64,000 bases of DNA from Ophelia neglecta (lineage: Eukaryota), in contig OZ260661.1 of assembly GCA_965285935.1 (NCBI GenBank), positions 93,062,001 to 93,126,000 on the forward strand, in the 5' to 3' direction. Both the position numbers and the translations under genes were made by a program. Position 1 is the first letter of the stretch, and every line of letters starts with the position of its first letter. The notes below the pieces were generated by a model. The model ran no database searches. It worked only from the letters and a program-made list of their open reading frames with translations, and had not been told where the DNA came from. This document shows, one piece after another, positions 6,001-30,656 of this stretch.

Positions 6001-9000
6001 AACTTAAATAACACTTAAATTCTGGCACTATACATGTGTTGCTTGATTGTTTTTCTGTCAGGCGGAGCTGGACCAGCAGGACCTTCAGGTCCACGAGGCC
6101 AACCAGGACCAGCTGGACCAGCTGGACCCAGAGGAGAAGCTGGACCACGGGGAGAGACCGGACCCGCCGGACCATCAAGTCCACGAGGCGAGAGGGGTGA
6201 GCAGGGTCCACCTGGACCTCCAGGCGAAAGTGGACAACCCGGCCAACCAGGACGCCCTGGCCCAGCAGGAGAAAGAGGACCCTCCGGAGAACCAGGGTCA
6301 CCTGGACCATCTGGTGAAAGAGGTGAACCTGGATTGTCAGGTCCAAATGGTCAGCCCGGTCCATCCGGGCCCCAGGGACCATCTGGTCAAAGAGGAGAGC
6401 CAGGGCCAGCCGGCCCCTCTGGGCCACGGGGAGAAGCCGGGCCTCAGGGAGGTCTAGGTCCACAAGGACCCCAAGGTCCACAGGGATCTCGCGGAGAACC
6501 TGGACCCGCCGGACCATCTGGTCAATCTGGACCTGCAGGACCCGCCGGATCTCCTGGACCAAGAGGCGAGGCAGGACCAAGAGGAGAATCAGGAACCCCT
6601 GGAACCCCCGGACAACGCGGAGAAACTGGTCCAGCAGGCTCACCAGGGCCCTCAGGCCAGAGAGGTGAGGCAGGACCAGCAGGACCTGCCGGTCAGTCAG
6701 GACCTTCTGGACCTGCTGGCCCATCTGGCCCCAGAGGGGAACCCGGACAGAGAGGTGAGCCAGGTAGCAGAGGCGAACCTGGTTCTCGAGGAGAACCAGG
6801 AACCCCTGGATCTGATGGAAGACCTGGCGAGAGAGGACAAGCCGGACCAGCAGGCCCGGCTGGAGAAGCTGGTCGTCAAGGACCTGCTGGACCTGCTGGC
6901 TCCAGAGGAGAACCTGGCCCTAGAGGAGAAGCTGGAACACCAGGCTCCCAGGGCAGCCAAGGAGCTCCAGGTAATATATAGAACATGCAGTTTGTCTGCT
7001 TTTAAAGCATGTCAAACCAGTTTTCCGACATTTTGAGATATGTATTCAGGAATTATTATAACTTGGTCGGTTTAACTTAAAATTTTGAATTGTAAATAAA
7101 ACTCTTTTGCTTTTTACCTCCAGGAGAGGCTGGTCCCGCTGGCAGTCCTGGTCAACGCGGGGAGTCTGGACCAGCCGGCCCCGCCGGACCAGCTGGATCG
7201 CCAGGAGAGCGAGGGGAGACTGGTCCGTCCGGAGCTCCCGGAAGAGATGGCTCCAGAGGACAACCTGGCCCAGCGGGACCTTCTGGTCCCGCCGGGCCTG
7301 CTGGCCCACGAGGAGAGCCCGGCCCAGCAGGATCAACCGGAGAACGAGGAGCACAGGGTCCGGCTGGAAGCCGAGGACAGCCTGGAGAGCGTGGAGAGGC
7401 TGGTACCCCAGGAAATGCTGGACGAGACGGCGCACGTGGTGAGCCTGGACCTGCCGGACCCTCGGGTCCATCAGGGCCTTCCGGACCAGCAGGACCTCGT
7501 GGAGAACCAGGTCAGCGAGGTGAACCCGGCCAAAGAGGAGAAGCTGGTTCAGCTGGAACTCCGGGTAAGCAGTATTTCCAATCTTTCAGGAATAAGTCTT
7601 CTTAATGTTATTTGTATATGAACCTTAACCTTAAAATTCCTCTTTCTAACAATGAACATTGTTCTTTCTAGGATCCGCTGGTCCACAGGGATCACCAGGT
7701 CCGAGAGGTGAACGAGGCGAAGCCGGCCCCTCGGGTGGAGCTGGTCCATCTGGACCACAGGGCCCGAGAGGAGAGTCAGGTACCCCCGGATCTGCCGGAC
7801 CAAGAGGAGAGCCTGGCCAACGTGGTGAGCCTGGAAGAGACGGCACCCCTGGTACTCCAGGATCGCGTGGAGAGGCAGGTCCTCAAGGTCCAACGGGACA
7901 AGCCGGACCTGCAGGGCCCTCCGGACCGGCTGGGTCACGTGGAGAACCTGGACCAGCAGGACCACAAGGCTCTAGAGGCGAGGCTGGCCCTCAGGGACCA
8001 GCAGGATCACCCGGAACAGACGGTATGTACTCGGCAATTCAGTATACAGATCACGATTAAAAGTATTACTATCAGCCGATATCATTAGACAGTAAGAGAG
8101 ACGAAATACAGTGGTTATTAAATTTGTCTTTGAAACAAAATCGAGAAATTTTAGTTCATGCGTGTGCCTTTACAAATCTCCAGGACAACCCGGATCAGCC
8201 GGACCTGCTGGCCCACGAGGTGAACCCGGCCCTGCCGGTGCCGCAGGCCCACGTGGCCAGCCAGGTGAGAGAGGCGAACCCGGTACTGACGGACAACCCG
8301 GACGTGCTGGTGAGCGCGGACAGGCCGGACCCAGCGGCCCAGCCGGACCATCAGGTCCAGCTGGCCCCGCAGGGCCAAGAGGAGAGCCAGGTCAACGTGG
8401 AGAGTCGGGACCTCGTGGAGAACAAGGACCCAGAGGAGAAGGCGGTGAGTGTTAACCAAGGTTTACTTTCCTTACACGGTCCAAATAAGCAATGTAAAAA
8501 AAAAACCACTATTAAAATATGAGGCAATACCATACAAATTTTCCTTTTTGTTAAACAGGATTACCTGGACCAGGTGGCCCAGCAGGCCCAAGAGGCGAAC
8601 CAGGTACACCTGGTTCAGCCGGAGAAACCGGACCTTCCGGGCCAAGTGGACCATCCGGCCCCGCTGGACCTTCAGGTCCACGTGGTGAGCCTGGATCAAG
8701 AGGTGAGGCCGGAGAACCAGGCCCCGCTGGTCCATCAGGACCACGAGGAGAACCAGGATCCCAAGGATCCCCAGGAGAAACAGGTCCTGCCGGTCCATCC
8801 GGACCAGCGGGCCCCAGGGGAACTCCAGGAACCCGAGGAGAACCGGGTCAACGAGGAGAGCCTGGATCAGCTGGACCACAAGGACCACAGGGAGGTAGAG
8901 GCGAACGTGGAGAGGCAGGACCAGCAGGTCCCTCAGGACCACAAGGACCAAGTGGTGCCCCTGGACAACGAGGAGAAGCTGGACCCGACGGACAGCCTGG

Positions 9001-12000
9001 CCGAGATGGTAGCCCTGGTAAGTAGAAATTCAAATACCTGTATATCGATATTATTTATTTTTAAAGTCATTTTCCAACTGCCGATTTTCACACTACTGTT
9101 GTATGTCGACTGCATTTTACTTTTTCTCTCGTTGTCCAGGAGCACAAGGAACTACAGGTCCAGCTGGACCACGTGGTGAGTCGGGCTTGCCAGGACCCCA
9201 AGGATCTCGCGGAGAGCCCGGATCAAGAGGAGAGCCAGGATCAGCTGGACCGGCTGGAGGCCCCGGAGAACGAGGTCAACCAGGATCCGCAGGTCCTTCG
9301 GGCCCTGCAGGACCTGCCGGACCAGCAGGACCACGTGGTACACCTGGACAGCGTGGCGAGGCAGGACCTCGTGGAGAGCCTGGATCAAGAGGCGAACCTG
9401 GTACTGACGGATCTCCTGGATCACCAGGACAACGCGGCGAGCCCGGACCTCAAGGACCATCAGGGCAGGCAGGCCCAGCAGGACCTGCAGGATCCCGAGG
9501 AGAACCTGGACCAGCCGGACCAGCCGGACCGCGAGGACAGGCCGGAACTCCCGGACAACAAGGTAACTTTTTTATTCATAGTCAATATATAAGTTAAATC
9601 AAAGCATACATACGTGAGTATTTATTACAGAGGCCATCCGTTAAGGGAAGGAAATATATAACGTATTATAACGTTGTATTAACGCCCCTAACAATTCCGT
9701 TATATTGTCTTGTGCAGGATCCCAAGGTCCCGCCGGACCTGCCGGACAACGAGGTGAAGCTGGCCCGCAAGGACCATCTGGAGCTCCCGGACAATCAGGC
9801 CCAGCCGGACCACGGGGAGAACCAGGAACAGCAGGTACTCCAGGTCAAAGAGGAGAGCCTGGGCAACGCGGTGAATCAGGTCCAGCAGGACCTGCCGGAT
9901 CCCCAGGACAAAGAGGAGAATCTGGACCAGCCGGTCCAGCAGGACCAGCCGGTCCTGCTGGCTCGAGAGGAGAGCCTGGTGCCCGCGGAGAGGCCGGACC
10001 ACGTGGTGAATCCGGAACACCTGGATCCGCTGGCCCAGCTGGAGAACGAGGCCCAGCAGGACCCCAGGGAGGTGTTGGATCTCCAGGACCCGCTGGACCA
10101 GCAGGCCCTCGAGGAGAAACTGGCTTGCCAGGTGAACCTGGTGTAGGCACACCTGGACAAAGAGGAGAACCCGGAACTCCAGGAACTCCTGGAAGAGCAG
10201 GCGAGAGAGGTCCAGCAGGACCCCAGGGACCACAAGGACCTGCAGGATCTCCCGGCCCCCGAGGAGAATCAGGAACTCCTGGAAGCGCTGGACAAAGAGG
10301 AGAAACTGGACCAGCAGGACAGCCAGGTTCGAAACTTATACCAATATGTCATTATTTCTGTTACAATTTTCTGTATGAACAAGCGATTTTACTAATAATT
10401 ATTAATTCTTCATTTAATAGGAAGTGATGGCCGTCCTGGACCTGCAGGGTCTAGGGGAGAACCAGGCCCATCCGGATCACCTGGAACACCCGGAACACGA
10501 GGAGAACGAGGTGAACGAGGCGAGGCAGGTCCCGCTGGTCCACAGGGACCCGCAGGTACCCCAGGACAACGAGGTGAGCCAGGATCAGCTGGCACCCCAG
10601 GTTCAGCCGGACCTCAAGGAGAACGAGGAGAAGCTGGACCAGCAGGACAGCCAGGGCCTTCAGGACCGTCTGGACCTCAGGGCCCCGCTGGATTACCAGG
10701 AAGCCGAGGAGAAGCAGGACCCGCTGGACCCTCCGGTAAGTTGAGGGCTTCGTTTTCATATAAGTGGTTTAATCTATGAAAGATCAGAAAACAAAACATT
10801 GCCCAACTTAAATTATGAAGATTGTCAGATTCATTACAATGAATTGTTTTCTTGTAGGCGAGCCCGGACCTGCCGGACCAGCTGGCCCGAGAGGCGAGAG
10901 TGGACAACCTGGGCCATCTGGACAGAGAGGACAACCAGGAGAGAGAGGAGAAGCCGGACCTGCAGGCCCACAGGGACCAAGAGGCGAGAGCGGCACTCCA
11001 GGATCCAGTGGCCCGAGAGGGGAGCCCGGATCAGCAGGACCCGCCGGATCCCCAGGACCAGGTGGACCGCGAGGCGAACGTGGAGAGGCAGGGCCTCAGG
11101 GATCTCCTGGAACAAGAGGAGAGCAAGGACCACGAGGAGAAAGCGGCACTCCCGGATCAGCAGGACCAAGAGGTCAACCAGGCTCACCTGGTCCAGCTGG
11201 TCCAGCTGGAGGACGCGGTGAGGTTGGACCTCAAGGACCCGGAGGAGAGCCAGGTCAACGTGGTGAACCAGGATCAGTCGGACAGACAGGTACATGCGTT
11301 GTTATATAACATGCTTAACCCATGATCCTTCATAGAAGGTTAGAATATATATTTATATATATTTGACTATAATTTCTGAGATTCAAGTAGGAGAAACGTT
11401 TAATGGGTGAATCATTTTGCGTTCGAGCGTCTTTCCCCTATAGAATTCAGTACCATTATTTCACCCTATGTTCTTTATGTTAGGACCCCCCGGTGGTCCT
11501 GGTCCACAGGGACAGAGAGGACTTCCATCTCCTGATGGTGCCCCTGGTGAACAAGGTCCCCAAGGTCCAGCAGGACCATCTGGGCAGCCTGGACCAGCCG
11601 GACCACAAGGTGCAAGAGGGGAGGCCGGACCAAGAGGTGAGCCGGGTACGGCTGGCCAAGATGGGCAGCCAGGACAAAGAGGCGAGGCAGGACCTGCAGG
11701 TCCCTCAGGACAGCCAGGACCTGCTGGACCAGCAGGTCCCCAAGGTTCAAGAGGAGAGGCAGGCCCACGAGGTGAAGCAGGTCCTCGAGGAGAATCTGGA
11801 ACACCAGGAACACCGGGTATGTAATGTTAATTGCTTTTCTAAGATAACGAGGTTGAGATGATCATATGTTAACTATGTTCAGATAATCAATCACTGGTTA
11901 TACAGTCCTTAGTGTCTCCCCGAGCAGGTGATATGTTGATTTGACTGGAAATGTAAAACTGACATTTTCTCGATGCAGGTGAACAAGGCAGAGCAGGACC

Positions 12001-15000
12001 TGCTGGACCTTCGGGTCAACCAGGACCTGCCGGCCCTGCTGGAGCAAGAGGCCAGCCTGGAGAACGTGGAGAGGTAGGACCTGCTGGACCTGCTGGAAGT
12101 CGGGGTGAGCCAGGTCCCGCTGGACCATCCGGTCCATCGGGTCAACCAGGCCCATCTGGACAGAGGGGCGAACCAGGGCCCGCCGGCCAACCTGGACCAC
12201 GAGGAGAAGCAGGCACTCCAGGTACACCTGGTACAGCTGGTGAGAGAGGACCTTCAGGACTTCCTGGCCCCTCCGGACCCCAGGGTCAAAGAGGCGAGTC
12301 TGGCACACCTGGCACTCCAGGACAACGTGGAGAGCAAGGCCCAAGAGGAGAGTCTGGAACTCCAGGAACCCCTGGAAGACAGGGCGAACGAGGACAACCA
12401 GGATCTGCCGGTGAAGCTGGACCACAAGGTCCAGCGGGAACACCAGGACAAAGGGGAGAACCTGGCTCTAGAGGAGAGCCTGGTCCAAGAGGAGAATCAG
12501 GAACAGCCGGAACACCTGGTAGTTAACAATTAAATAGACATCATTCAAGGGTGGAATCTTGGGAAAAATTGTAAAAAATTTGACTTTAACTGTACATGAA
12601 CACTCAATAAGGTTGCCATGTGTTTAAATTCTTTCAGGGTCGGCTGGAGAAGCAGGACCTCAAGGACCCAGAGGCGAACCAGGACCAGCAGGCCCTGCCG
12701 GCGCAGCAGGCCCAGCAGGACCTCGGGGAGAACGCGGAGAGTCCGGTCCAGCCGGACCTGCCGGTTCTCGAGGTGAAGCAGGACCGAGGGGTGAATCAGG
12801 TACGCCAGGATCTGCTGGCAGAGCAGGAGAAAGAGGACCCGCGGGACCATCAGGACCTGCAGGACCATCTGGCGGAGCTGGACTTCCTGGCGCACGGGGC
12901 GAACCAGGCCAGAGAGGAGAACCAGGCACAAGAGGTGAGGCTGGACCTGCTGGCCCAGCCGGAGAGCCAGGAAGAGATGGCCAACCTGGACCCTCTGGCC
13001 CAGCCGGTCCCGCTGGACCGAGAGGAGAATCTGGTCCAGCAGGCAGCCCAGGACAACGAGGCGAACCTGGCCCAAGAGGTGAATCCGGAACACCTGGTAC
13101 CCCTGGCAGTCAGGGAGAAAGAGGTGAAGCAGGACCTGCCGGACCTTCAGGCCAAAGGGGACAACCCGGATCCGCTGGACCAAGAGGCGAACCAGGCACC
13201 CCTGGAACTCCAGGTGAAGCAGGAAGGCAAGGAGAGAGAGGCGAGGCTGGACCTGCAGGAGAGCCTGGACGCGCCGGCTCACCTGGTCCATCAGGACCAT
13301 CCGGACCCGCAGGACAACCAGGCCCTCGTGGCGAAACTGGACTACCAGGTCCATCAGGATCAAGAGGCGAGCCCGGTGCCCGAGGAGAACCTGGAACAGA
13401 CGGTAGGCCAGGGGAGAGAGGAACGCCTGGATCAGCAGGTCCATCTGGACCAGCCGGACCAGCAGGCCCAGCTGGCGAACCCGGCTCACGAGGGGAACCT
13501 GGAGAACGAGGACAACCCGGATCAGCTGGTCCCGCAGGTACAGTTTTTACACACATCATGCGATATGTCATGTTTTTAAATTGAAGCTGAAGCAAGAAAA
13601 AATTCACTGGCCATTCAACTATGTATTTGTAAATTGTTTCAGGACCATCTGGACCACAAGGATCCCCTGGTGAACGAGGAGAGCCAGGACCCGCAGGACC
13701 AGCTGGCCCTGCTGGCCCCAGAGGAGAACAAGGACCACGAGGAGAACCAGGAGCACCATCAGCTAGGGGTGAGCGCGGTGAGGCCGGACCTGCTGGACCA
13801 GCTGGACCATCAGGCCCAGCTGGACAACCTGGACCCCCAGGACCAGCTGGAAACGCTGGAAGCAGAGGTCAACCCGGACCAGCCGGTCCCCAAGGAGCTC
13901 GAGGTGAACCAGGGCTTAGCGGGCCTTCCGGCCCAGCTGGACCCGCAGGTCAAAGAGGATCTCCAGGAGAACGAGGAGAACCAGGATCACCTGGGGAGCG
14001 TGGAGAAGCAGGAACTCCCGGATCTAGCGGCCCACGAGGAGAAGCAGGTAATTAGATTAATGTTATAGTGACACCAATCACTTAGGTATATATTGTAAGT
14101 TCTCACACTTACGAACATTTAATTTGTTATAGATTTGAATATACAATGGTGCAATATTGACAGATATTTCACAGAGCAAAGTAATGGACAATACATTGTA
14201 TTAATTGTTTAAACTATTTAAATAAAGGACCCGACGGGCAACCAGGACCAAGCGGACCACGTGGTGAACCAGGATCCCAAGGACCATCGGGATCACCCGG
14301 ACCGGCGGGACCTTCCGGCCCAAGAGGAGAGCCAGGTCCTCGTGGAGAGTCAGGCTCTCCAGGACCACAAGGTTCACGTGGCGAGTCAGGCCCAGCTGGA
14401 CAAGCAGGTACACCAGGCGAAAGAGGAGAGGCAGGCCCAGCTGGTCCTCAGGGACCCTCGGGCAGATCTGGACCAGCAGGCCCAGCAGGACCAAGCGGAG
14501 AACCAGGATCACGAGGAGAACCAGGCCCACGTGGAGAATCAGGAACTCCAGGACAGGCCGGTCGACAAGGTGAAAGAGGAGAACCAGGTACTGCAGGCTC
14601 TCCCGGACCCGCAGGACCAGCAGGACCTAGAGGCGAGGCTGGACCACGCGGAGAATCCGGCCCAAGAGGAGAGCCAGGACCCAGAGGAGAATCAGGTATT
14701 TGATGTTGATTATCTAGATACAACTTTATGTCTGTAGCGCTCGTCACAACTTTAGTCGCACTCATCAGTATTTTTACGTAACCATCCCATTTTCTATTAA
14801 TAGGCACCCCCGGAACACCAGGATCTGCCGGATCAAGAGGAGAAGCAGGACCAGCTGGCCCCTCTGGCGGTGCTGGACCCGCAGGACCCGCCGGCCCAAG
14901 AGGAGAGGCTGGCCCAGCAGGATCAAGGGGAGAACCTGGCCCACGAGGTGAGACAGGTGAAGCTGGAACCCCAGGAAGTGCCGGACAAGCTGGGCCCCCT

Positions 15001-18000
15001 GGGCCTTCAGGACAATCTGGACCAGCCGGCCCAGCAGGATCTCCCGGACCGAGAGGCGAACCAGGATCACGTGGAGAGGCTGGACCAAGAGGGGAAGCAG
15101 GCACGCCTGGACAGTCGGGTACTCCTGGTCAAAGAGGAGAGATTGGCCCAGCAGGCCCAGCCGGGCCAGCCGGCCAAAGAGGAGAACCTGGTCAGAGAGG
15201 TGAGCCAGGACCAGCTGGACCAGCAGGTCCACGTGGCGAATCTGGTACTCCAGGATCAGCCGGGCGACCCGGAGAAAGAGGACCAGCAGGAGGAATAGGA
15301 CCTGCCGGACCCAGCGGTGGCCGTGGAGAAGCTGGCCCAAGAGGAGAAGCTGGACCGCGAGGAGAAGCTGGAACCCCCGGAACACCTGGTAAATTTTAAT
15401 AGGACTACCATCGTAATGAACAAAGATAAATGTGTAAAATACCCAGAATACCAAGCGGAACACATATGTTAAATATTCTATTATTTGTATTAAAGGTTCT
15501 CAAGGTGAGAGCGGACCGGCGGGACCACGAGGAGAAAGTGGACAGCCTGGCCCAGCAGGACAGCCTGGACCTAGCGGACCTGCAGGACCTCGTGGAGAAC
15601 CAGGCCCAGCCGGACCAGCTGGATCCCGTGGAGAAGCTGGACCAAGAGGAGAATCGGGAAGCGCAGGCATTCCCGGCTCTGCTGGACCAAGAGGAGAACC
15701 CGGCCCATCCGGACCATCTGGACCATCTGGTCCAGCAGGACCGAGGGGAGAATCCGGATCGAGAGGAGAACCAGGTCCTCGTGGAGAGTCAGGAACCCCC
15801 GGTACACCCGGCCGACAAGGAGAACGAGGACCAGCCGGCCCTGCAGGACCCGCTGGCCCAGCAGGATCACGGGGAGAAGCAGGACCCAGAGGAGAACCAG
15901 GTACTGATGGTTCACCGGGCCCCAGAGGAGAATCAGGCACACCTGGGTCAGCTGGATCACCAGGTCCTAGAGGCGAAAGCGGACCATCTGGACCAGCTGG
16001 ACCCGCCGGACCTCGAGGAGAATCTGGTACCCCAGGATCCGCAGGCCAGAGAGGAGAGTCCGGACCTGCTGGTCCTCAGGGACCACGTGGAGAGCCCGGT
16101 ATTTATTTTTCTTTTAATCTTCCGGACAAAATGTATATTAGCCAAGAAACTTGATGATCAAGAGGCAATGTATTATGTTATCTAGTATCTAATGTACTCT
16201 ACATTCGTTCATGTAAACAGTTCACATATTAGCGTTCTTTTTGTCACACTATATATTTCACAATCCCAGTGTACAAGGTTATTGTACATTTAAACTTGAG
16301 GGAGGTCTCATCACTGGTTTGAGCGCAACGGAAGAATAATAAATGACATCTGTTCCCTAAACAAAACCCCTTTCGTATCAGGAACTGCCGGAGAACCTGG
16401 ACCCGCTGGCCAGAGAGGAGAACCTGGACCATCAGGACCCTCCGGTCAACCCGGAACGTCTGGCCCGCAAGGACCACGAGGTGAGCGCGGAGAACCAGGT
16501 TCGGCTGGACAAAGAGGAGAGGCCGGACCATCTGGACCCGCAGGACAACCCGGCTCAGCTGGCACACCCGGTCAAAGAGGAGAGCAAGGTCCAGCTGGTC
16601 CATCAGGACAGGCTGGATCACCGGGACAACGTGGAGAGCCAGGACCAAGAGGAGAGGCTGGACTCCGAGGAGAGGCAGGAGAGCCAGGACGAGCTGGAGA
16701 GCGAGGTGGACCAGGACCAGCAGGCCCTGCCGGCCCAGCTGGACCCAGAGGCGAGTCTGGAACACCTGGCCAGCGAGGAGAAGCCGGATCACCTGGAACT
16801 CCTGGCAACAGAGGAGAACCAGGCCCAGCCGGAAGAGCTGGTAAGAATAATTGTATAAAATTCACGCTTACATCTCGTTTATTAAAGAAAAGGTACATTC
16901 TTATGCTGTGTACATTTCATGTGCACTGTATCAGTTTCATTTTACCCATGCAATTACAACATTTCCATAAAAAAACATGATTCATTGCAAAAGTTTCGGA
17001 ACTAACGGCACTCTAGACGAAAAAAGCAAAGCAAAGCCAGGCAGAAAATGCGGACATGCATACAGCGACATGCATATAGGCCATGGCGGGATAATTAGAT
17101 TTAGACCCAATTAAATAGAACTTTTTCAATCTGTACGTATCCTTGAAGTAGCGCACTGTATTATATATTGCAATTTTTCTTTTAGGTACACCTGGCTCAC
17201 AAGGACCACAGGGACCAAGAGGAGAATTAGGCCCAGCTGGACCACAAGGACCAGCTGGTGAACGTGGACAGTCCGGAGAACCCGGACCAGCTGGAACCCC
17301 GGGATCCGCTGGCCAGAGAGGTGAACCTGGTCAAAGAGGAGAGGCAGGCACTCCGGGCACGCCTGGAAGTGCTGGACAACGTGGGGAAGCTGGACCATCA
17401 GGACCACAGGGCCCAGCTGGCCCTGCTGGCCCAAGAGGAGAATCTGGACCAAGAGGTGAGCCAGGACCACGAGGAGAATCTGGTTCCCCAGGTAGCGCCG
17501 GACAGCCAGGTGAGGCTGGAAGAGCGGGTCCAGCCGGACCAGCTGGACCATCAGGCCCGAGAGGTGAAGCCGGACAACCGGGAGAACAAGGTCAACGTGG
17601 AGAGCCTGGACAACGAGGAGAATCTGGTACACCTGGTACCCCTGGAAACCGTGGAGAGCCCGGACCAGCCGGCCCATCGGGACAAAGAGGCGAAGCCGGT
17701 CCACAAGGACCTAGAGGTGAACCAGGACCAAGAGGAGAAGCAGGATCTGCCGGACCTGCCGGTTCAGCAGGGCCCCGAGGAGAACGAGGAGAGTCAGGCC
17801 CCGCAGGTCCATCTGGACCAGCCGGAGTACCAGGTCAAAGAGGCGAGCCAGGGCAGAGAGGAGAACCTGGAGCCCGAGGATCTGATGGCAATGCTGGATC
17901 ACCAGGTATGTATTTTTCACCTAAACCAATTGTATTTCTGGAAGTAGAAATACGTATGAAGCACAATTACTACTGCCTTGAATGTTCTTGTAGGCACTCC

Positions 18001-21000
18001 TGGAGAAGCAGGACCACAAGGACCAAGAGGAGAATCTGGCTTAGCTGGCCCATCCGGCCAGCCAGGTCCCTCTGGACCAAGAGGAGAGCCTGGAGAGTCC
18101 GGACAACCGGGATCTCCTGGACAACGAGGAGAAGCAGGCCCACGCGGAGAAGCAGGTACACCAGGTTCAGCGGGAACACCCGGTTCTCGCGGAGAACCTG
18201 GACCGTCCGGACCTAGTGGGCCAGCTGGTTCACCAGGACCAAGGGGAGAATCTGGACCGCGAGGCGAGCCTGGACCACCTGGAGAGGCTGGTTCTCCTGG
18301 CCAAGCAGGAAGAGCTGGAGAACGTGGACCTGCAGGTGAGGCTGGACCCTCTGGACCAGCAGGCCCAAGTGGCAATCGTGGTGAACCCGGAGCAAGAGGC
18401 ACGCCAGGACAAAGAGGAGAGCCTGGACCAGCAGGACCTGCCGGAGAGCGAGGAGAGTCCGGATCACCGGGACCTTCTGGACCTTCAGGACCTTCTGGAC
18501 CTGCTGGAGAGCCCGGACAAAGAGGAGAACAAGGACCACGAGGAGAAGCTGGGTCCCCTGGGCCAAGTGGACCTCGCGGAGAACCAGGTATATCTATGAA
18601 ACATACACTTGCAACAGTTTGCTGATCCATTGTAAATATTTTTTTTATATAATTGATAATCAGAGAGCCATGTCTGATCATTTCCTTATTCGCTTAAAGG
18701 TTCACAGGGTCAGTCTGGATCACCAGGACAGAGAGGTGAACCCGGTCCAGTAGGACAATCAGGACCTTCTGGACCTGCAGGCCAACCAGGACCTGCTGGA
18801 CCTGCAGGACCACGTGGAGAGCCTGGACAAGCAGGAACACCGGGCTCACGTGGTGAGGCTGGACCTGCTGGGCCCCAGGGACCACGAGGAGAGGACGGGT
18901 CGCCTGGAAGTCCTGGCCAGTCTGGATCTCCCGGACCAGCTGGACCAAGAGGAGAGACCGGCGAAAGCGGACCTCAGGGCCCGAGAGGAGAACCTGGACC
19001 AGCTGGACCATCTGGATCAAGAGGAGAGCGCGGTGAAGCTGGTTCGCCAGGTAGCCCCGGAGAAGCAGGACCTCAAGGTCCACGAGGAGAGGCTGGCACC
19101 CGAGGAGAGAACGGACAGGCCGGACCAGCTGGACCAGCCGGTCCATCTGGCGAGAGAGGCGAACGAGGACCGGCAGGACCAAGTGGTCCCGCTGGACCAC
19201 AAGGAACTCCCGGTTCACGAGGTGAACCAGGACCATCAGGGCCAAGAGGGGAAGCTGGACCACGTGGACAACCTGGATCACCTGGAGAAGCAGGTTTGAT
19301 ACATAACTACCTAAAGTCTCTGTAAAACATCACCAAAAAATGAAAAATGGCTTGAAAATAAAATTACTTCCATAATTTTACAGGTACACCGGGAGGATCC
19401 GGTCCAGCTGGACCTCGAGGCGAAATAGGACCAGCAGGACCTAGTGGCCAACCTGGACCATCTGGTCCTGCAGGACAAAGAGGTGAACCCGGCCCAGCCG
19501 GTCCAGCTGGCCAACGCGGCGAGGCCGGACCTAGAGGAGAGTCTGGTACACCTGGACAAGCTGGACGTCAAGGAGAACGAGGCGAGACTGGACCTGCCGG
19601 ACCATCAGGACCTGCCGGTCCATCTGGACCAAGAGGAGAGTCTGGCCCTGCAGGAGAACCAGGATCACGAGGTGAACCCGGACCTCAGGGACCTTCTGGT
19701 CAACGTGGAGAACCTGGATCACCTGGACCTGCTGGCTCAGCAGGCCCGAGGGGAGAGAGAGGTGAACCAGGCACAAGGGGAGAACCAGGCACCAGAGGTG
19801 AACCAGGACCAGCCGGACCAGCAGGACCACGAGGAGAATCTGGTAGTTAATATTTCCTTATTGTTCAAAGAACATACGAATTCGTTTCAATGGCCGCTTA
19901 ACTGCGGCGACTTTCTGAACGTACCGGTATATGTTATATAATTAATAGAAAATCAAGTTACTTTTTTGCAGTAACCGCCCTTTCTATTAAAGCAAATATG
20001 TTAATCTTACTAAAGACTAGTTATATTTGTTATGCAGGAACTCCTGGAAGTCAAGGACCATCTGGACCCAGAGGAGAAACTGGCGGACCCGGTTCTGCTG
20101 GAGAACCAGGACCAGCCGGCCCATCGGGACCACGAGGACAACCAGGACAGCGAGGAGAATCTGGAACTCCTGGAGAAGCTGGACCACGTGGAGAACCAGG
20201 ACCAGCTGGACAGTCTGGACGACCTGGCGAGAGAGGATCCGCAGGTCCACAAGGACCTCAAGGTCCAGCAGGACCAAGAGGGGAACCAGGTAGCCCTGGA
20301 CCCTCAGGCCAAAGTGGATCACCCGGACAGCGTGGAGAACCTGGAACAGCTGGAACACCAGGAACTCAGGGTGAGAGAGGAGAAAGCGGACCCGCTGGAC
20401 CGTCAGGCCCCGCTGGCCCATCCGGCCCTGCAGGACAACGGGGAGAACCCGGACCTGCCGGACCTGCCGGCCAGAGAGGTGAAAGTGGACAGCGTGGAGA
20501 ACCTGGACCAGCAGGGCCATCAGGACCCCGAGGAGAAGTCGGACCTTCTGGACCCTCCGGATTGTCAGGACCCGCAGGACCACGTGGAGAACCAGGATCT
20601 CCGGGACCAGCAGGACAAAGAGGAGAACCCGGCCCACGAGGTGAATCAGGCACACCAGGAAGCGCCGGTCAACGTGGAGAAGCAGGACCAGCAGGACCAT
20701 CAGGCCCGGCTGGATCCCCAGGACCACGAGGAGAAGCTGGCCAGAGAGGTGAACCAGGAGAAGCTGGACCACAAGGACCCAGAGGAGAGTTGGGCAGTGC
20801 CGGTCCTCCAGGTGAGCATTTTATTTTTGCCCCATTGAAAGAATCCAGATAAGAGTTTACAGGCCGGCGTATTTAGGCAGAACCAGATTCGTATTTGAAC
20901 GTGTTGGTTTTGCAAAAGTAGGCCTCGATAATGGCGAATAAAAGTTCACTTTGACTGACCACTCGTACCCTGAGCTGTGTATTAGACAGACCGTGAAGCA

Positions 21001-24000
21001 GCGGTCAATAATGTCTTGTGTAGAAGGTATAATTCATATTAGTTTGTAAAAACACTTAGTTTAGTCATTCCTATCAAAATATATCACTATTACACTGGGA
21101 AACTGGCTGTTTTGACTTAAGATAAATTACTATTGTGTAGGATCCGACGGATCACCCGGTCCGAGTGGACAACGAGGAGAGCCGGGATCCCCTGGGCCTA
21201 CTGGAGCCATTGGACCTTCAGGACCATCTGGTCCCAGAGGTGAGTCAGGACCCCGTGGAGAATCCGGTCCAAGAGGAGAGCCAGGATCCCCTGGCCCGTC
21301 TGGACAAAGAGGTCAACCCGGCTCACAAGGATCACCTGGAGAGGCAGGACCAGCTGGTCCAGCCGGACCACGAGGCGAAGCAGGACCCCGCGGAGAGTCT
21401 GGCACACCGGGAACACCTGGAACACGAGGAGAACCCGGACCAGCCGGACCCGCTGGTCAAAGAGGTGAATCCGGACCAGCTGGACCATCCGGACCCGCTG
21501 GAACACCAGGAGCTCGTGGTGAATCTGGAGAACCAGGACAGCGCGGTGAACCTGGTCCAGCCGGACCCCAAGGATCGAGAGGAGAATCTGGTAGGTTGAT
21601 TACTCAGAGCTGTCAGAATGTATTGCCGTTTGGCTTGCGTGGGGTCAACAATGTAGTAGCCATACGAGACTGCGAATCTGTTCTATATAGTTCCATGAAA
21701 GCATAAGCAGAAAATAGTGTTAACAAACTACTGCCTACTCTAGAAGATGTAATGCAATGCTTGTTTCTTTGTTTGTGGTTTGTTTATTTGTGAACCCCCT
21801 TTAGAGGAAAGTACACTATAAACATTCAGAAACTGGGTACAATACGAGATATTATGACAATAAGAAAAATGGTAACTTCACACCACAAATTGTGCTTTAG
21901 GCTATGTATTAATGTAAATGCCTATTATTTTGAAGACATTTTAAGTATTTTGCCCTATTTACAGGACCCGCTGGACCATCTGGACCAGCTGGACCAAGAG
22001 GAGAACCAGGCCCATCAGGACCCCAGGGTCCATCCGGGCCTGATGGCCAGCCAGGTTCACCTGGAGAGGCCGGTACCCGAGGAGAACAAGGCCAGAGAGG
22101 AGAACCAGGTCAAAGAGGCGAGGCTGGGTCACCTGGTCCAGCCGGACAAAGAGGCGAGCCAGGACCAGCAGGACCAAGTGGACCATTAGGACCATCAGGA
22201 CCAGCTGGACCTGCAGGAGAGAGGGGAGAGTCTGGACCAGCTGGACCCCAGGGATCCCCTGGAACAAGGGGAGAATCTGGGCCAGCTGGCAGCCCTGGTC
22301 CTTCTGGACCAAGAGGCGAACCAGGCCCGAGCGGACCTAGAGGAGAGCCAGGAACAAGAGGAGAACAGGGATCTCCAGGTACTCAAGGAGAGCGTGGCGA
22401 AGCAGGACCTGCTGGTCCCTCGGGACCACGTGGAGAGTCTGGACCGTCAGGTCCAGCAGGAAGTCCTGGTCCAGCAGGTCCATCTGGACCAGCAGGCCCA
22501 TCTGGACCCCGAGGGGAGCCTGGAACAAGAGGAGAGCCTGGACCAGCCGGTCCATCAGGACCGCGAGGAGAGTCGGGACCATCAGGCCAATCTGGACCTC
22601 CAGGAGAATCTGGATCACCAGGTCCCCGAGGTGAAAGGGGACAACCGGGATCCCGTGGAGAACCTGGACAAGCAGGTATGTGGCGACTGGACAAGAAAAG
22701 TCATACTTGTTCATACTTTGAAAAAAAATTATTTCTCATAAATGGGCCATGCTTATAAAAATGACCCGTGCTGGCTGGATAGTAGTTGTAAATTTCATCT
22801 CTGGGCTCAAGTGAAAATAGCGATTTATTTCACAACCATTGCAACCAACGGCTTTTTTAATTACAGGTGCGCCAGGACAATCTGGACCAGCTGGACCTCG
22901 TGGAGAAGCTGGTCCTGTAGGACAAACTGGCCAATCTGGACCAGCAGGGCCAGCAGGCCCACGAGGAGAAACTGGAGAGAGCGGCTCTCCAGGACCTAGA
23001 GGGGAATCAGGACAACGAGGAGAACCCGGACCCCTTGGCCCTGCCGGACCACGTGGAGAATCTGGCCCACAGGGACCTTCAGGACAATCTGGATCCCCAG
23101 GACCTAGAGGAGAAAGCGGAGAGCCAGGTTCAAGAGGAGAGCCCGGACCAGCAGGACCCTCAGGTCCACGAGGAGAGTCCGGTCCACCTGGAGAGTCGGG
23201 CACACCTGGAACACGTGGAGAAGCAGGACCAATCGGTCCCAGTGGCCCAGCCGGGTCACCAGGACCCCGAGGAGAATCAGGTACACCAGGAGAAGCAGGA
23301 CCACGAGGTGAAGCCGGTCCCGCCGGATCCCCTGGACAACGAGGAGAAAGAGGACCTGCCGGACCTCAAGGCAGCCCAGGTACCGCTGGACAAAGGGGAG
23401 AACCCGGACCTGCAGGCCCATCTGGCACAAGAGGAGAACAAGGACCTCGAGGAGAGTCTGGCACTGCAGGATCACCCGGTATGTTTCATATATTTAACAG
23501 GGCTATCCTTTGATACGTTTGATCATAGCCTAATTTTTGACAGCTACATAAGACAGTATTTTCTTATGCTTATGAACCAAATTTGTATCTTCTTTTGTAA
23601 CAAAGAAAATTTTAAAAATTGGTCAATGCCCAGTCATCTAAATGTATCTTGTTCTTGTAGGACCGGCCGGACCCGCTGGACCGTCAGGACCACGAGGCGA
23701 GGCTGGCCCAGCTGGACCAACTGGAGAATCTGGTGTATCTGGACCTGCCGGACCACAGGGATCTCCTGGTGCACGAGGAGAACCAGGACAGCGAGGTGAA
23801 CCAGGACAACGAGGTGAACCTGGACCCGCAGGACCATTGGGACAAAGAGGAGAACGAGGACCATTGGGTCCAGCTGGACCTTCGGGGCCGGCTGGCCCAG
23901 CTGGTCCATCGGGACCAAGAGGTGAAACCGGCCAACGTGGAGAGGCAGGCCCACTAGGACCATCTGGACCTGCCGGACCCGCTGGACAGCGTGGTGAATC

Positions 24001-27000
24001 AGGCCCTGCAGGGCCCACGGGAGAAACCGGACCAGCAGGATCACCTGGCGAACCTGGACCTTCCGGCCCACGTGGAGAAGCCGGCCCAGCTGGACCTTCA
24101 GGACAGAGAGGCGAGCCCGGGTCACCTGGGCCGCGTGGAGAGGCAGGACCAGCAGGTCCTTCAGGACCCCTTGGACAATCAGGACCACCAGGTCCAATTG
24201 GTGAATCAGGTCCTCGTGGACAACCAGGATCGAGAGGAGAAACTGGACCAGCTGGAGAACCAGGTTCGTAAAATATACTATATATTTTATAATATATAAA
24301 ATAATGAGATAATTGAAATAAATTGTTGCAGAATAATTTTATATGATCACGCTATTGTAGCATGGTATGAAGCAAATTCTATGTTTTATTTTATTATAGG
24401 TCCGGCGGGACCAAGTGGCCCATCTGGACCAAGAGGTGAATCTGGACCACAGGGACCAAGCGGTCCTTCTGGAACACCTGGCACACGAGGAGAGATTGGA
24501 CCACCAGGACCAAGCGGACAGCGCGGAGAAAGAGGACCAGCAGGAGAGGCTGGACCACAGGGTCCATCTGGATTAGCCGGACCACGTGGCGAGGCAGGGC
24601 CTTCCGGACCTTCAGGTCCTTCAGGTCCTTCAGGAGAACCTGGATCACCTGGACCTCGCGGCGAGCCAGGTCCATCAGGACAGACCGGACAACCTGGCCC
24701 TGCAGGTCAACCTGGCCCACGAGGAGAACCAGGGTCAAGAGGAGAATCTGGACAACGTGGACAATCTGGACCACCTGGACCAAGAGGTGAATCTGGCCCA
24801 CAAGGACAATCTGGCCCACCAGGGCCCTCGGGACCTTTGGGACCATCAGGACCTCGAGGAGAACCTGGACCAGCCGGACCAGGATTACCAGGACCTGCAG
24901 GTCCACGAGGAGAGTCTGGACCTCCTGGCCCAATAGGTTCGTACTTGCACCTGCTTTTTTTGTATATTTCAGAGGTTTGTTCTTGTATAAGGTATTTTTT
25001 CTCATATTGAAATGTAAACCCGATTTGTACAGTTAATAAATGGCCTTAAACATAATTTTTCTTAATTCTCACACAGGTCCATCAGGCCCATCTGGCCCAT
25101 CCGGACCACGAGGTGAATCTGGACCACCGGGTCCAGCTGGACAACCAGGACCTCTAGGACCATCAGGACAAAGAGGAGAACCAGGAAACAGAGGACAGTC
25201 AGGTCAACGTGGAGAAGCTGGTCCTCCTGGAGAATCCGGCTTGCCAGGACCAAGTGGTCCAAGAGGCGAGTCTGGACCACCAGGAACACAAGGAAACCAA
25301 GGACCTCCCGGACCACTCGGAGAAGCCGGCCCTGCTGGCCCCATCGGACAACGAGGTGGGCCTGGTCCAAGTGGACCACGAGGAGAAAGTGGCCCAAGCG
25401 GACCACCTGGCCAGAGTGGACCCCGAGGCAACGCTGGTGAACGAGGATCACCTGGAGAAGCCGGACCAGCAGGCCCAGCTGGACCACGTGGTAATCCAGG
25501 TTCTATTGGAACCCGAGGAGAAAGAGGACCACCAGGATCAATGGGACAGTCTGGTCCCCCAGGACCATCAGGCCCGCTCGGACCTGCTGGACCACCCGGC
25601 CCACGAGGTGAATCAGGTGGCTTGGGAGAACCGGGTCCTGCTGGACCCCCTGGCCCACTTGGCCGACCTGGTCCACAAGGACCATCTGGTCCATCTGGTC
25701 CCAGAGGAGAACCAGGACCGAGCGGACCATCTGGACAGGCTGGATTCCAAGGACCACGAGGTGAACCTGGAGAATCTGGACCACCAGGGCCGAGAGGAGA
25801 GAGTGGACCACTTGGTCCATCTGGCCCACCCGGAACAAGAGGAGAATCCGGACCACGAGGTGAACCTGGTTTACCAGGTCCCAACGGCCCAGCGGGAGGA
25901 ACAGGACCAAGCGGTCCCCCCGGACCATTAGGAGGACCTGGCCCATTGGGTCCACGAGGTCCATCAGGAGAAAGAGGCCCACAGGGTCCGAGCGGCCCAA
26001 GAGGAGAACCAGGACCTCCCGGACCATCAGGACAGTCAGGTAACCAAGGTCCTCCAGGACCACTAGGACCAATAGGACCACCAGGTCCACTTGGCGAAAG
26101 AGGAAACGCAGGGCCACCAGGGTCACAGGGTGAATCTGGTGACCCCGGAACTCAAGGACCTGCTGGTCCACCAGGACCGAGAGGGCCAAGCGGAGAACGA
26201 GGACCAGCTGGCGGAGTTGGTCCACCAGGAACCAGAGGAGAGTCAGGTCCACCTGGACGACCTGGGTCCACAGGAGCACCAGGTCCACTGGGAGGTAGAG
26301 GGCCACGCGGACCTATTGGACCATCTGGTCCTCTAGGAAGAACTGGAGAAAGAGGTGGACCAGGCGAGTCCGGACCAGCGGGATCACCTGGCTCCAACGG
26401 CCCACCCGGCCCCAGTGGACAGAGGGGACAACCGGGACCACCAGGAACAAGAGGTACAGCTATTTCAAAGTATAAACGTGTCGTTTAATGCCATTACAAT
26501 TATCAATAATTTCGAAGAAATTCTGGCTTAGTAACAAGTGGGAAAGAATCGTAACATAGGGACCCTGTATAACATTAGTTAAACCTGTATTTATAATGTA
26601 TATAAACAACTCGTGTTTGCATTGTGTAGGAGGTGACGGCTTGCCAGGAGGACCCGGACCTAATGGCAGACCAGGAGCGACTGGATGGACAGGTGCCCGA
26701 GGAGGAACCGGCTCTTCCGGATTCCCCGGACCATCTGGTCAGCGAGGTTTAGCCGGACCATCTGGTCCTCCAGGAGAGCAAGGTTTGCCTGGAGAAGATG
26801 GTCGCCGTGGAACCAACGGCCAACCCGGCGCAAGCGGACGCCCAGGTAAACACGGAAAATCTGATTTCTCCGAAGTAGAATAGGTTTTAATTGCAATGTC
26901 TGGTAATATTATGAGTAACAAGAACAGTATCATAATCTAAATTGATTCCCTACGGTAAAAATAATAAAATGGCAAGTAAGATTGATAACAATGACTTTGC

Positions 27001-28418
27001 AGGAGCTACTGGGTGGACTGGCCGACCAGGACCGAGTGGAAGCCCTGGACGCACCGGTGGTACTGGACTCACTGGCCCTACTGGCCGCACCGGATCTACA
27101 GGTAATCAATCAGTCTGTGTTTATAATTGATGCAGGTAATTTATAAATAGAATTAAAGATGCAGCTAAGTTGTGTAAGGTCAAATCCGCATAGACAAAGA
27201 ATTTTCATTAACTAAAGCTATGCTTAAAAATATTATTACCTTGTTCATGGTGCATCATTTATTTGCTGTCAATCCGTAGGTGGCACCGGTTTCGCTGGTC
27301 CTAGAGGTCCTCCAGGTCTGAGAGGCGAAAGTGGTCAACCAGGCCGACCAGGCCGTGACGGAGCTTCCGGAGCTACAGGCCCAACAGGTAGAGTACAGCC
27401 AGATGTTCTGATAGCGGGATACGAGCAAAGACAGACGTTGTTAAAGTTGCCTAGTCTAAACTTTTATCTCGTGGAATGATATCCCTTAAAAGGATCCATT
27501 AATTTTTAAATATCCAGGAATTTTTAACAGATTTAAAATATTATTGGCCAAAAAATGTCACTAGATTAGCCTCCGGTTTGAATTTTGTTCGATAACTGTT
27601 GTATTATTTGTTGTGTAGGCCGTACTGGAGCCACCGGAGCCACAGGTCTTGCTGGACGTTTGGGAGCCACTGGATACACTGGCCAGACCGGAGCCACAGG
27701 TTTCACTGGTCAAGCAGGACGACCAGGAGCCGGCTTCCTCGGTAAGACTTTCATATCTATTTCATGTCTCATTCGTTGGAGGAAAGTTTCATAAAGTCAG
27801 GATTGTGTTTGGAGTCACACTAATATTCACTAATGAACAAGAATAAGTAAAGTTCTAAGAATGTTTTGACAAGTTGCCTACCGCCTTTTCCTTTCAGCAA
27901 TGAACAGTAAAATGAACGAAGATGAGCAAGTTGAAAATAAAATCGCCGGCAAGTTAGGCGCGGCCTCCAATACACTGGGCACGACGACGATTGCGCTCGC
28001 CGCCTGGGCCGGTGTGGTGACCATGGCGCTCGCCGGTATGGTGGTGCTAGTCTTCAGGCGAATCCGTCGCGGTGGGGTTACCTGGTCCTCAAAGACCGAC
28101 GCCGAGTCGGGTGTGTCCAGTGAGACCTCCTCCGAGAAGTCCTCCGTCATAGACCTCAATGACGCCCAGTCAATTGCCCAGATGGGCTTCGCCAATGGCG
28201 GTTTGGACGCCGATTTCGAGGAGGAGAATGTGCAGCACGAGGAGGTGGATTTCGACACCGTTGACGGGCTGTACGATGACAACACGTCCGACGTGGCAGA
28301 CGTACACACCGAGGGCAAGCAGCCGCCATCTTTTAGTCGGGCCATCACCAAGAGCAAAAACAGCAACTCGCAAAACCTGCGTGGACTATTTTTACCAGAC
28401 TCGGGCTCATCCTTTTAG
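1..28418 (+). CDS. Giant Gly-X-Y collagen with C-terminal transmembrane anchor (5'-partial; 43 exons, about 7,204 aa in window)
   Basis: Exons bounded by GT/AG, read manually: <1-160, 272-1198, 1314-1538, 1755-2366, 2478-2720, 2899-3159, 3267-3995, 4103-4615, 4726-5166, 5278-5790, 6062-6970, 7124-7564, 7672-8022, 8184-8444, 8559-9017, 9140-9562, 9718-10326, 10421-10735, 10858-11289, 11484-11816, 11979-12518, 12638-13537, 13643-14047, 14228-14695, 14804-15388, 15496-16098, 16382-16840, 17186-17905, 17994-18587, 18700-19293, 19384-19842, 20038-20811, 21141-21590, 21965-22675, 22867-23478, 23661-24263, 24400-24936, 25077-26453, 26630-26845, 27003-27101, 27280-27387, 27619-27741, 27898-28418(stop). 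Sum 21,615 nt. All introns are phase 1, all internal exons are multiples of 3 (38 of 41 multiples of 9), and GC-rich exons alternate with short AT-rich introns. Confidence 0.92.
27990..28070 (+). other. Transmembrane helix plus stop-transfer basic cluster of the collagen (type I topology)
   Basis: [22 protein letters not shown] (22 uncharged, mostly hydrophobic residues) followed directly by RRIRR. The last exon joins in frame through a phase-1 splice (G|CA = Ala, then MNSK...). Confidence 0.85.
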
Positions 28419-30656
28419 ATATGTACAATGTGTAGCTGACTGACTGACAAAACTCACTAACTTATAAATGTCCAATAGCACCCGCCCGAGCGTGCTGCCA
28501 TGAGCAAAGGCATAATCAGAAGTATTGTAGACATTGTTAAATAGCTTCCATACAAGTTGACCTAATTTACTTATACTATAACTAACCGTGATAAGCACTT
28601 TTAGTGATGAAAACTGTAATTGTCGTTGTTCAATACAAATCAAACTTTATTATTAGTTAGGCTATAAATATAGATAATAGGTATAGGGGAAAATAACGCC
28701 TCGATCAGTTGTTTACTGGTAAGTTGGTGCTACGACAATTGTTAGGTTCATCAACCATCTGCCAATTATATTAACATATCAAAGCAACTTACGCCTGCAG
28801 GGGTCACTACCTGTCTTTCAAAAATGAAAATAATCATTATTGGGTGATATGTTTATTTTATGGATCTGATATTTTTCACTTTAAGAGTCTTAATGCATCT
28901 TGAAACTCATAGATCTGCTTTAATTCAGCGAGACATACATGGTAGTACTTGAATCATTTTTGGGCAAAATTCAATGAAGTCACGCTAAGTTGTATTCATT
29001 GGTTATTTGCAGCTAAGACGCCTTCTTGCCAAGTGGCCACAGTGTTGAATAATGGCTTTAATAATAATTAAAAAAATGATTTGCTGTTAGAAAACATCGT
29101 TATATATGTATATTGTTATTTTGTTACCATCTTAATTAATTAAATATCCATTGTTGCTGCCATCTTTTATCACACGAAAAGAAGAGTCCATGACATATAC
29201 AACACTCGTGAGCTTCAGTCCCAATCATTTTCATTTATGTTATTGCAGTCTAAAACAGGGCAAGTTTCCTTTACTATTTTGTACATATGAAACTCATTTT
29301 AAAGCATCCAGTTTCTGGAACATACGAACGTCTCTGGCATTAGCTTCGTTGTAATAAACAAATTAACGAAATAAAAATAATTTACATTAATTTTGTGTTT
29401 TTCGTGCATCTTTTTAAAGTTGAAAGAATGTTTAACAACAATATTCATAAGAATATGCTTCTACTTGAATTTAAGATTATTTGAACTTAATGTAAGCGAA
29501 TTAAATGTTAAAACCAATATAGAAGGCGTGTAATACCCTAACAATTTTATAACCTAGTTCTACTCGACCAGAATTTCAAATGGAAAACAAACAGCTTATC
29601 ATGAAAACAAGCCAATTAATTTTTCAAATTATTGCTATAATGAATAATCTAAAGATTTATTTTGCATTCAAATATCAAGAAATTAGTTTATAGTAAACTA
29701 GCATTATAGTGTCTTATATACTGTCCTGATATGGTCTAATATAGTGTAAATAATCTATTTTGAGCGAAGAGCAACATTACATAAAAAAGAATTATTGACA
29801 AACAGCAGAGGAGGGTATATATATAGATAAATATATATAGTTAGAAGGCACCGACGTATACAATGGCTTAAACTGGACGAGAAAAATAATGAGAAAGGGC
29901 GCCCAGACTGTCTTTAAATAGCACTAAACACTAAACAAACAGGTATTTTAATGCGCATGTCACCCACCAGACCGGTCGGTTTCACGCCGACCCCAGAAAT
30001 AGCTTTTTATTTATACCGTATCAAAGTTTGATGATCGCATACTGCTATCACACGACAGCCTTTGAAAGCATTCACTGTACATAGACATTTTATGATCAGA
30101 CACATTTTTCTCTGATCTCTGACGTTAGAACACGTCCAATCTTACAGCCACATTGCTGTTACTGGTATCGAGTTATTAAGAGTGTTTCAACATGATACAT
30201 TTATTTATCAGACACAAAGGCCTAAATAGGTTAATTCCGTGCCCATATATAGAGTAAATACAAGTTAGTTCGCGCCATGTTTAATTCCATTACCTATCAT
30301 TGGTCCACTAACCCTTGTCGCGCCCGTTGTGTGGGGTAAGGGACTGACTGCATGGAAATAAATGATGCGCCAAATTACACAAATTTACCCTATGATCTAT
30401 GTGATTTCACGTACGATAACTGCAAAAATGTTATATAAAGCTCAAGTTAAATTCATCTTAAAACGTTGTGAATATCCCGTCATCATTTTAAAAGTAGTAG
30501 CCTAACTATAAAACTAAACACCGTTGCATTTTTTATATAGAACAGGTACTGTCAGTGCACTACTATCACACTACCTGTTAGCAAGTACAGAATTAAAGGT
30601 TCGACGAAATATGTTTTTCACTGACTCCTAAAGGTTTATATTATGATTGATTATTA

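Follow-up and report, generated by a model that had tools for sequence, protein, structure and literature searches.

A giant annelid collagen gene with a terminal exon for a predicted coiled-coil stalk and C-terminal membrane anchor

Introduction

The collagen gene described here raises the question of how three giant chains could be brought into register. Its helix is eight to nine times as long as that of type I collagen, and the chain has neither a type II membrane anchor nor a globular C-terminal domain. To our knowledge, every membrane collagen characterised so far is of type II, and the secreted collagens that are well studied all use a globular C-terminal domain to bring their chains into register. 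The giant cuticle collagen of annelids has been known biochemically since the 1990s; its rod measures about 1.5–2.5 micrometres, compared with about 0.3 micrometres for fibrillar collagens.

We analysed a stretch of 64,000 nucleotides (the window) in which an initial annotation had placed a collagen with a C-terminal transmembrane helix. Coordinates are those of the window, and negative coordinates lie upstream of it. The 30 kb upstream of the window were also read, and the chain was analysed exon by exon, with the natural intronless contig L003 as the reference for a continuous model. The genome encodes an erythrocruorin linker C-terminal domain (PF16915, E 5e-14), of a family that we take to be part of the annelid giant haemoglobin; thus, the host is an annelid.

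Results

Structure of the terminal exon

The features of the locus are listed in Table 1. The collagen helix lies on the plus strand, of which 1–27741 codes for collagen almost throughout, with 7,101 Gly-X-Y residues in the window against 111 on the other strand of the same stretch. The initial annotation had described a helix end of GRPGAGFL followed by a stalk of about 30 residues, a hydrophobic helix of 22, RRIRR and a tail of about 115 residues, and each of these elements was recovered with exactly these numbers. The codon split by the last intron, G27741 plus CA at 27898–27899, encodes Ala, and the frame is then open up to the stop codon. The phase-1 G|GN split at 27741 is that of the other introns read in the collagen gene. 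Numbered from the Met after this Ala, the stalk comprises residues 1–30, the hydrophobic helix 31–52, RRIRR 53–57 and the tail 58–172. From RRIRR to the C-terminus there are 22 acidic and 26 Ser/Thr residues.

Table 1. Coordinates of the collagen gene, its terminal exon and related loci
Feature	Position	Strand	Details
Collagen helix in the window	1..27741	+	47 Gly-X-Y runs, 7,101 residues
Last three collagen exons, short and of altered composition	27002..27741	+	Thr at Y in 62–67% of triplets (two exons); Pro at X rare, near 0
Last collagenous exon	27619..27741	+	13 Gly-X-Y triplets, end GRPGAGFL, first base of split codon
Intron	27742..27897	+	Phase 1, GT..AG, 156 nt; position and phase shared with two other genomes
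Stalk, predicted extracellular	27898..27989	+	Ala plus 30 residues; heptad a/d pattern, predicted coiled coil
Predicted transmembrane helix	27990..28055	+	22 residues; invariant Trp; family motif W-A-x-V-V-T-x-A
RRIRR	28056..28070	+	Putative stop-transfer, positive-inside cluster
Tail, predicted cytoplasmic	28071..28415	+	115 residues, acidic, predicted disordered, conserved short motifs
Stop codon	28416..28418	+	
Probable 3' untranslated region	28419..29375	+	GC 0.33; AATAAA hexamers at 29353 and 29370
Gene A, head-to-head paralogue	between -51555 and -90000	-	At least 8,535 Gly-X-Y residues
Gene A, last exon	L023 8966-8517 (about 91 kb before the window start)	-	A-L-Q opening, stalk, membrane helix with Trp..V-V-T motif
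Stalk/membrane-helix locus on C8	G000:C8:46004290-46007586 (L002/L016)	-	EGF, EGF, stalk, same helix motif; other tail

The exon contains no Cys and matched no Pfam family, the sub-threshold hits being chance matches. These results bear out the earlier statement that the chain ends without a Cys-bearing COLFI, C1q or collagen IV NC1 domain. A search of the ESM Atlas gave a best score of 0.81, and all hits were unrelated single-pass proteins that share just the look of a type I tail; the tail is named by neither resource. In the orthologous contig L006, the 3' untranslated region is about 1.1 kb long. An antisense open frame of 162 codons (27878–28366, minus strand) was also observed; it is most simply read as the shadow of a GC-rich coding frame.

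Junction between the exon and the collagen

The junction was tested on contigs of relatives. In this species, the search for runs found three, all of one sample, and their contigs over 26500–29500 are genomic, span the introns and contain no spliced joint. With the terminal exon alone as query, seven close homologues and 31 cluster representatives at E <= 1e-3 were found, the closest representative at 1e-54; hence, the exon is more than a chance open frame. All of these homologues are 125–252 residues long, as expected if a gene caller of the prokaryotic type had called single exons.

In at least four other samples, intronless contigs run from Gly-X-Y straight into the stalk, helix and tail at the predicted junction (G-F-L/M-A-M/L). 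L003 and L004, from two runs, carry one open frame of 2,660 residues, composed of 2,480 Gly-X-Y residues, G-F-M-A-M, stalk, helix and tail. The junction is identical in kind in L005, L006 and L007, from three further runs, and in L014, while the far more distant L013 (2,932 residues) joins collagen to a tail with 28% identity. The last six exons of the window, aligned singly, tile residues 1961–2660 of L003 without gaps. At its 3' end, about 20 nt past an AATAAA, L006 has 23 A, where the otherwise identical L005 has other letters. The A-run is therefore untemplated and L006 is a cDNA, the only one among the intronless contigs that is proven by its poly(A). The two genomes that share the intron are represented by the genomic contigs L008 (tail 82% identical) and L009 (65%), both from other species.

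These contigs bear on the idea that exon 27898–28418 is a separate gene for a small single-pass membrane protein starting at the ATG at 27900. The exon does offer an open frame of 172 codons from this ATG, gene callers have called it as a protein of its own in every database, and its third-position GC is 0.70, compared with 0.22–0.29 in the collagen exons. However, the transcript contigs fuse the exon in frame with collagen. The first full codon, ATG here, is TTG in L008 and GTG in L009, directly past a conserved acceptor, so the ATG encodes a conserved hydrophobic core residue and is not an initiator. Furthermore, the VWA exons of the collagen gene are equally high in third-position GC (0.59–0.62), which indicates a split between non-collagenous and collagenous parts rather than between two genes. 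We rejected the separate gene, now an extremely improbable reading, on the in-frame joined contigs and the non-conserved ATG; the initial annotation had named separate transcription of the exon as fatal to its proposal, and the relatives' contigs contradict such separate transcription. Because orthologous transcripts join the exon to collagen and the position and phase of the intron are conserved, we consider it very probable, as judged from sequence, that this terminal exon belongs to the collagen gene itself and encodes the normal end of its chain.

The initial annotation had also considered a different terminal exon with a conventional trimerisation domain. No other candidate coding exon was found from 28419 to the retrotransposon at 33805. 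No COLFI domain lies near the locus, the COLFI genes of this genome being at C1:56.46 Mb and on C4 and C9, and no C1q domain lies near it among the best 150 of 491 candidates. These results speak against a model in which the membrane form is one isoform and the bulk of the chain is secreted after intron retention or through an alternative last exon. Retention of intron 27742–27897 would indeed end the chain at a stop 17 codons past the helix. On the other hand, the membrane tail is present in 7/7 intronless contigs, the read-through peptide is not conserved (L008), and a chain that lacked the stalk would be left with nothing to set its register. We regard the isoform model as improbable.

Several features of the surroundings were observed besides. 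An apparently intact LINE-type retrotransposon lies at 33805–39044 (plus strand), 5.4 kb downstream of the collagen, with two long open frames; the first has 574 residues, and the other, of 1,170, contains AP-endonuclease and reverse transcriptase domains. In another species, a myosin heavy-chain gene lies tail-to-tail just past the last exon of the collagen (L009 12945–20519, minus strand), and no such gene was seen among the open frames downstream in the window. The genome also shows a very large expansion of C1q genes on contigs C5 and C12 of G000: all 150 of the 491 candidates that were scored exceeded the Pfam cut-off, and the genes often stand in tandem on C5 (8–9 Mb and 99–115 Mb) and C12 (69 Mb).

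The whole chain

The gene begins about 10.66 kb before the window, with its ATG at -10661. In the 36 residues of the first exon, a basic n-region is combined with a hydrophobic core of 13 residues (mean 2.68), which we called a signal peptide by eye and hydropathy, and a phase-1 donor leads to the VWA exon. Two VWA domains follow, the first matched in two halves (E 1e-19 and 9e-12) and the second at 3e-34. The triple helix begins at -7299, with 1,680 Gly-X-Y residues upstream of the window, and comprises in total 8,781 Gly-X-Y residues (2,927 triplets) in 65 runs within a chain of about 9,400 residues. At 0.286 nm per residue, the rod would be about 2.51 micrometres long, in agreement with the micrometre-scale rod proposed earlier.

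Pro occupies 43% of the X positions and 22% of the Y positions. The composition changes in the final 40 or so triplets, which consist of Gly-Ala-Thr-like units with Thr-rich Y positions, and this block is kept in L003, L005, L013 and L014. It may be a nucleation zone, possibly glycosylated as in Riftia. Codon usage is sharply divided within the one transcript (window 1–28415, L010/L011): third-position GC is 0.22–0.29 in the Gly-X-Y exons, even when Gly and Pro codons are left out, and 0.59–0.71 in the VWA and tail exons.

Membrane topology

The 15-residue flanks of the hydrophobic helix contain five Lys/Arg after it and one before it. It is the only long hydrophobic span and ends 120 residues from the C-terminus; in family members, a conserved tail of 110–150 residues follows it. 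We infer from sequence that the collagen chain is a type I membrane protein, as the initial annotation had proposed, because it has a signal peptide, two extracellular-type VWA domains in its N-terminal part, a helix that requires the ER lumen, and the five-to-one distribution of Lys/Arg.

Instead of spanning the membrane, the hydrophobic stretch might be a signal of the GPI type or lie buried in a soluble propeptide. Its hydrophobicity, and nothing more, would fit such a reading. Its length of 22 residues, its best 19-residue Kyte–Doolittle mean of 2.25 and the basic cluster and conserved disordered tail that follow it argue for a membrane span, so that the non-span reading is very improbable. 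A cleaved GPI-type signal was rejected, since such signals sit at the extreme C-terminus and the conserved tail past the span rules this out.

Predicted coiled coil of the stalk and membrane helix

Outside its heptad positions, the stalk shows little conservation. We anchored 38 family members on the invariant Trp and counted the fraction of Leu, Ile, Val, Met or Phe at each position. This fraction was 0.96 at position -35 relative to the Trp, 0.90 at -31, 0.61 at -24, 0.68 at -17, 0.95 at -10 and 1.00 at -3, compared with at most 0.15 at most other stalk positions; the weaker a/d positions (-28, -21, -14 and -7) reached only 0.24–0.45. An AlphaFold2 monomer built on alignment A1 gave one helix over residues 2–57 (pLDDT 76–93), in which the stalk is continuous with the membrane span. 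For the tail, disorder was predicted (pLDDT under 50 for the most part), apart from a single short and weak helix.

The initial annotation had also proposed trimer modelling of the stalk and membrane helix. Three copies of L003:7313–7642, a piece in which the stalk and membrane helix are accompanied by 44 residues of the triple helix and 12 others, gave a score of 0.50 against 0.06 for the best control, although this score includes the 44 collagen residues, which any model pairs and which hold the lowest-error contacts. Contact agreement between runs was at least 92%, and partner pLDDT was at least 77. The score mark was passed by 21/30 proteins solved as pairs and by 0/23 solved as single chains, a calibration made on two copies, not three. 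The contacts ran through the whole triple helix and then continued in a strict 3–4 (a/d) rhythm over residues 47–100, a stretch that takes in the stalk and the membrane helix with its Trp; the chains were parallel and in register with the triple helix. The model thus supports, but does not show, a parallel three-chain coiled coil of stalk and membrane helix. Since the collagen part pairs in any model, the conservation of the heptads is the more independent evidence.

The earlier proposal held that the membrane anchor itself aligns the three chains. Registration at the C-terminal, membrane side is supported by these results; the anchor alone is probably not the device, the heptad stalk being continuous with the helix. 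The registration device is probably a membrane-embedded coiled coil.

Conserved motifs of the tail

Four residues are invariant in alignment A1: Trp36, Arg56, Asp67 and Pro166. The conserved blocks of the tail are D-A-E at 67–69, SSVIDL, EVDFDxVxGLYDD, PxFxRAIT and, at the C-terminal end, GLFxPDxGSSF. A Ser/Thr-x-hydrophobic end is present in 20/24 complete tails despite register shifts (SSF, STF, SSFM, SSTF, SSFL). The protein of this locus has the features of the stalk–membrane helix–tail family, namely a heptad stalk, a Trp with a Thr five residues on, a basic cluster, a D-x-E motif and, towards the C-terminus, an FxPD block. The D-x-E presumably resembles a COPII export signal, and we take the end of the tail to resemble a class I PDZ ligand; both readings are leads, not findings. 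A word-indexed search among proteins of 1,460–4,650 residues, a range that leaves models of eight to nine thousand residues beyond its reach, found none carrying the tail.

Paralogues

The collagen gene stands head-to-head with a second giant collagen gene, gene A (Table 1). The last exon of gene A also encodes a stalk and a membrane helix, followed by a shorter tail that is unrelated to that of 27898–28418. A profile search of the genome with A1 matched the gene itself and one locus on C8, a distant paralogue in which two EGF-like exons, instead of collagen directly, precede the stalk. Both tail searches of the genome missed the gene A anchor, which was found by reading the 3' end of that gene; thus, the search of this genome was not exhaustive. 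The membrane helix is kept across paralogues with differing tails, an argument that the helix as such has a specific function.

Discussion

Our analysis established the gene model, its architecture, its conservation and the lack of a conventional C-terminal trimerisation domain. Taken as a whole, the reading that we consider likely is that exon 27898–28418 serves constitutively as the last coding exon in one member of a head-to-head pair of giant collagen genes, and that it encodes the end of a type I chain that is registered by a coiled coil of stalk and transmembrane segment, sorted through its tail, and then released or kept as a tether. In the proposed mechanism, three chains in the ER membrane would pair through the stalk and transmembrane segment into a parallel three-stranded coiled coil. 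This would set the register at the C-terminal end, from which the triple helix would zip from C to N, and the coiled coil would stand in for a C-propeptide or NC1 domain. The D-x-E pair, the acidic Phe/Tyr blocks and the Ser/Thr-x-hydrophobic end of the tail may bind cytoplasmic sorting or scaffold proteins. Such partners would export the rod and keep it at the apical or microvillar membrane, where it would either be cleaved, close to the membrane or inside it, and enter the cuticle, or be kept as a tether.

A more specific version, which we offer tentatively, is that the membrane-embedded C-terminal coiled coil is the selection and registration device of a 2.5-micrometre cuticle collagen, and that the tail lets the epidermal cell hold, export (D-x-E), scaffold (Ser/Thr-x-hydrophobic) and orient the rods before a juxtamembrane or intramembrane cut. 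If this is true, the orthogonal fibre layers of the worm cuticle would arise under the direction of the cell, and the exit of oversized collagen from the ER would be solved by the cargo itself.

The anchor could also be permanent, the product being a surface tether of the epidermal membrane or its microvilli to the cuticle or another matrix rather than a cleaved bulk fibre of the cuticle. The strong conservation of a cytoplasmic tail with an end of the scaffold-binding type is in keeping with a tether, and the stalk, besides being poorly conserved outside its heptad positions, contains no RxxR, dibasic or other recognisable cleavage site. However, the rod is as long as the extractable cuticle collagen of annelids, and two such genes stand together, as expected of an abundant structural product. 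A permanent anchor also overlaps with the likely model above instead of excluding it. We judge a permanent anchor to be possible yet doubtful.

If the model holds, it would be a third way of nucleating a triple helix. The question of how epidermal microvilli lay the ordered collagen plywood of worm cuticles becomes testable, as does that of how a cell exports cargo far larger than a transport vesicle. The module of stalk and membrane helix is small and portable, and could be attached to recombinant collagens as a tag that sets their register. The gene would then also provide a gene-level anatomy, with both ends defined, for a giant annelid cuticle collagen, of which giant models are already present in PMC12403961 with the anchor unmentioned.

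The gene product is fairly likely to be annelid cuticle collagen. This collagen has been described as a helix of great length that carries globular domains (Gaill et al. 1995; Mann et al. 1996; both cited in PMC11766948), and collagen models of 7,719–8,859 residues are reported for alvinellids and an earthworm (PMC12403961). The present chain likewise has a very long, almost uninterrupted helix and a globular end, with two VWA domains per chain. Its excess of Pro at X over Y is that of the earthworm collagen, and it shares the Thr-rich Y positions near one end. The gene is tied to the extracted protein by size and composition only. A membrane anchor is mentioned neither in PMC12403961, in which the word "transmembrane" occurs zero times, nor in PMC11766948.

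Membrane collagens are described as type II in the literature that we searched, and the MACITs were not found in annelids (PMC4678570). Our search of the literature for a type I or C-terminally anchored collagen found none; the orientation of the present anchor is the opposite of that of the membrane collagens described so far. The chain resembles the type II membrane collagens of vertebrates and invertebrates (the MACITs XIII, XXIII and XXV, and collagen XVII) in its collagen ectodomain, single-pass anchor and juxtamembrane coiled coil, which in those proteins nucleates the trimer, with possible proteolytic release. In contrast, those proteins have an N-terminal signal anchor and fold from N to C, whereas the present chain has a signal peptide and a C-terminal anchor. 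An N-terminal cytosolic domain with a signal anchor of the MACIT/XVII type was not found here, the 36-residue signal-peptide exon being joined to VWA. The coiled coil of the present chain also lies on the C-terminal side, its stalk lacks a furin-type dibasic site, and its triple helix, which is nearly uninterrupted, exceeds theirs about 15-fold in length.

The cuticle collagens of Caenorhabditis elegans, such as SQT-3 (PMC10538796), are likewise collagens of an apical cuticle that are at first epidermal membrane proteins, with possible release. Unlike the present chain, they are short, Cys-flanked and type II, and are cut by BLI-4 at an N-terminal RxxR. Short Cys-flanked Gly-X-Y blocks of the nematode type were not found here; the helix is long and nearly continuous, and the C-terminal part is free of Cys.

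The fibrillar collagens, with their COLFI C-propeptide, share with our model C-terminal registration followed by zipping from C to N, which for the present chain is a prediction; they differ in having the COLFI domain, which is absent here, as is any Cys in the terminal exon. The collectins (SP-D and MBL) have a three-stranded coiled coil directly C-terminal to the helix as a registration and nucleation element, as would the present chain; they are soluble and end in a lectin domain, whereas here the coiled coil would extend into the membrane and be followed by a cytoplasmic tail. Nucleation by a coiled coil that adjoins the collagen helix is a known principle, used by the type II membrane collagens and the collectin necks. 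The suggestion of a new route of collagen assembly therefore stands in part: the principle is shared with these systems, and the C-terminal, membrane-embedded position of the coiled coil is what is new.
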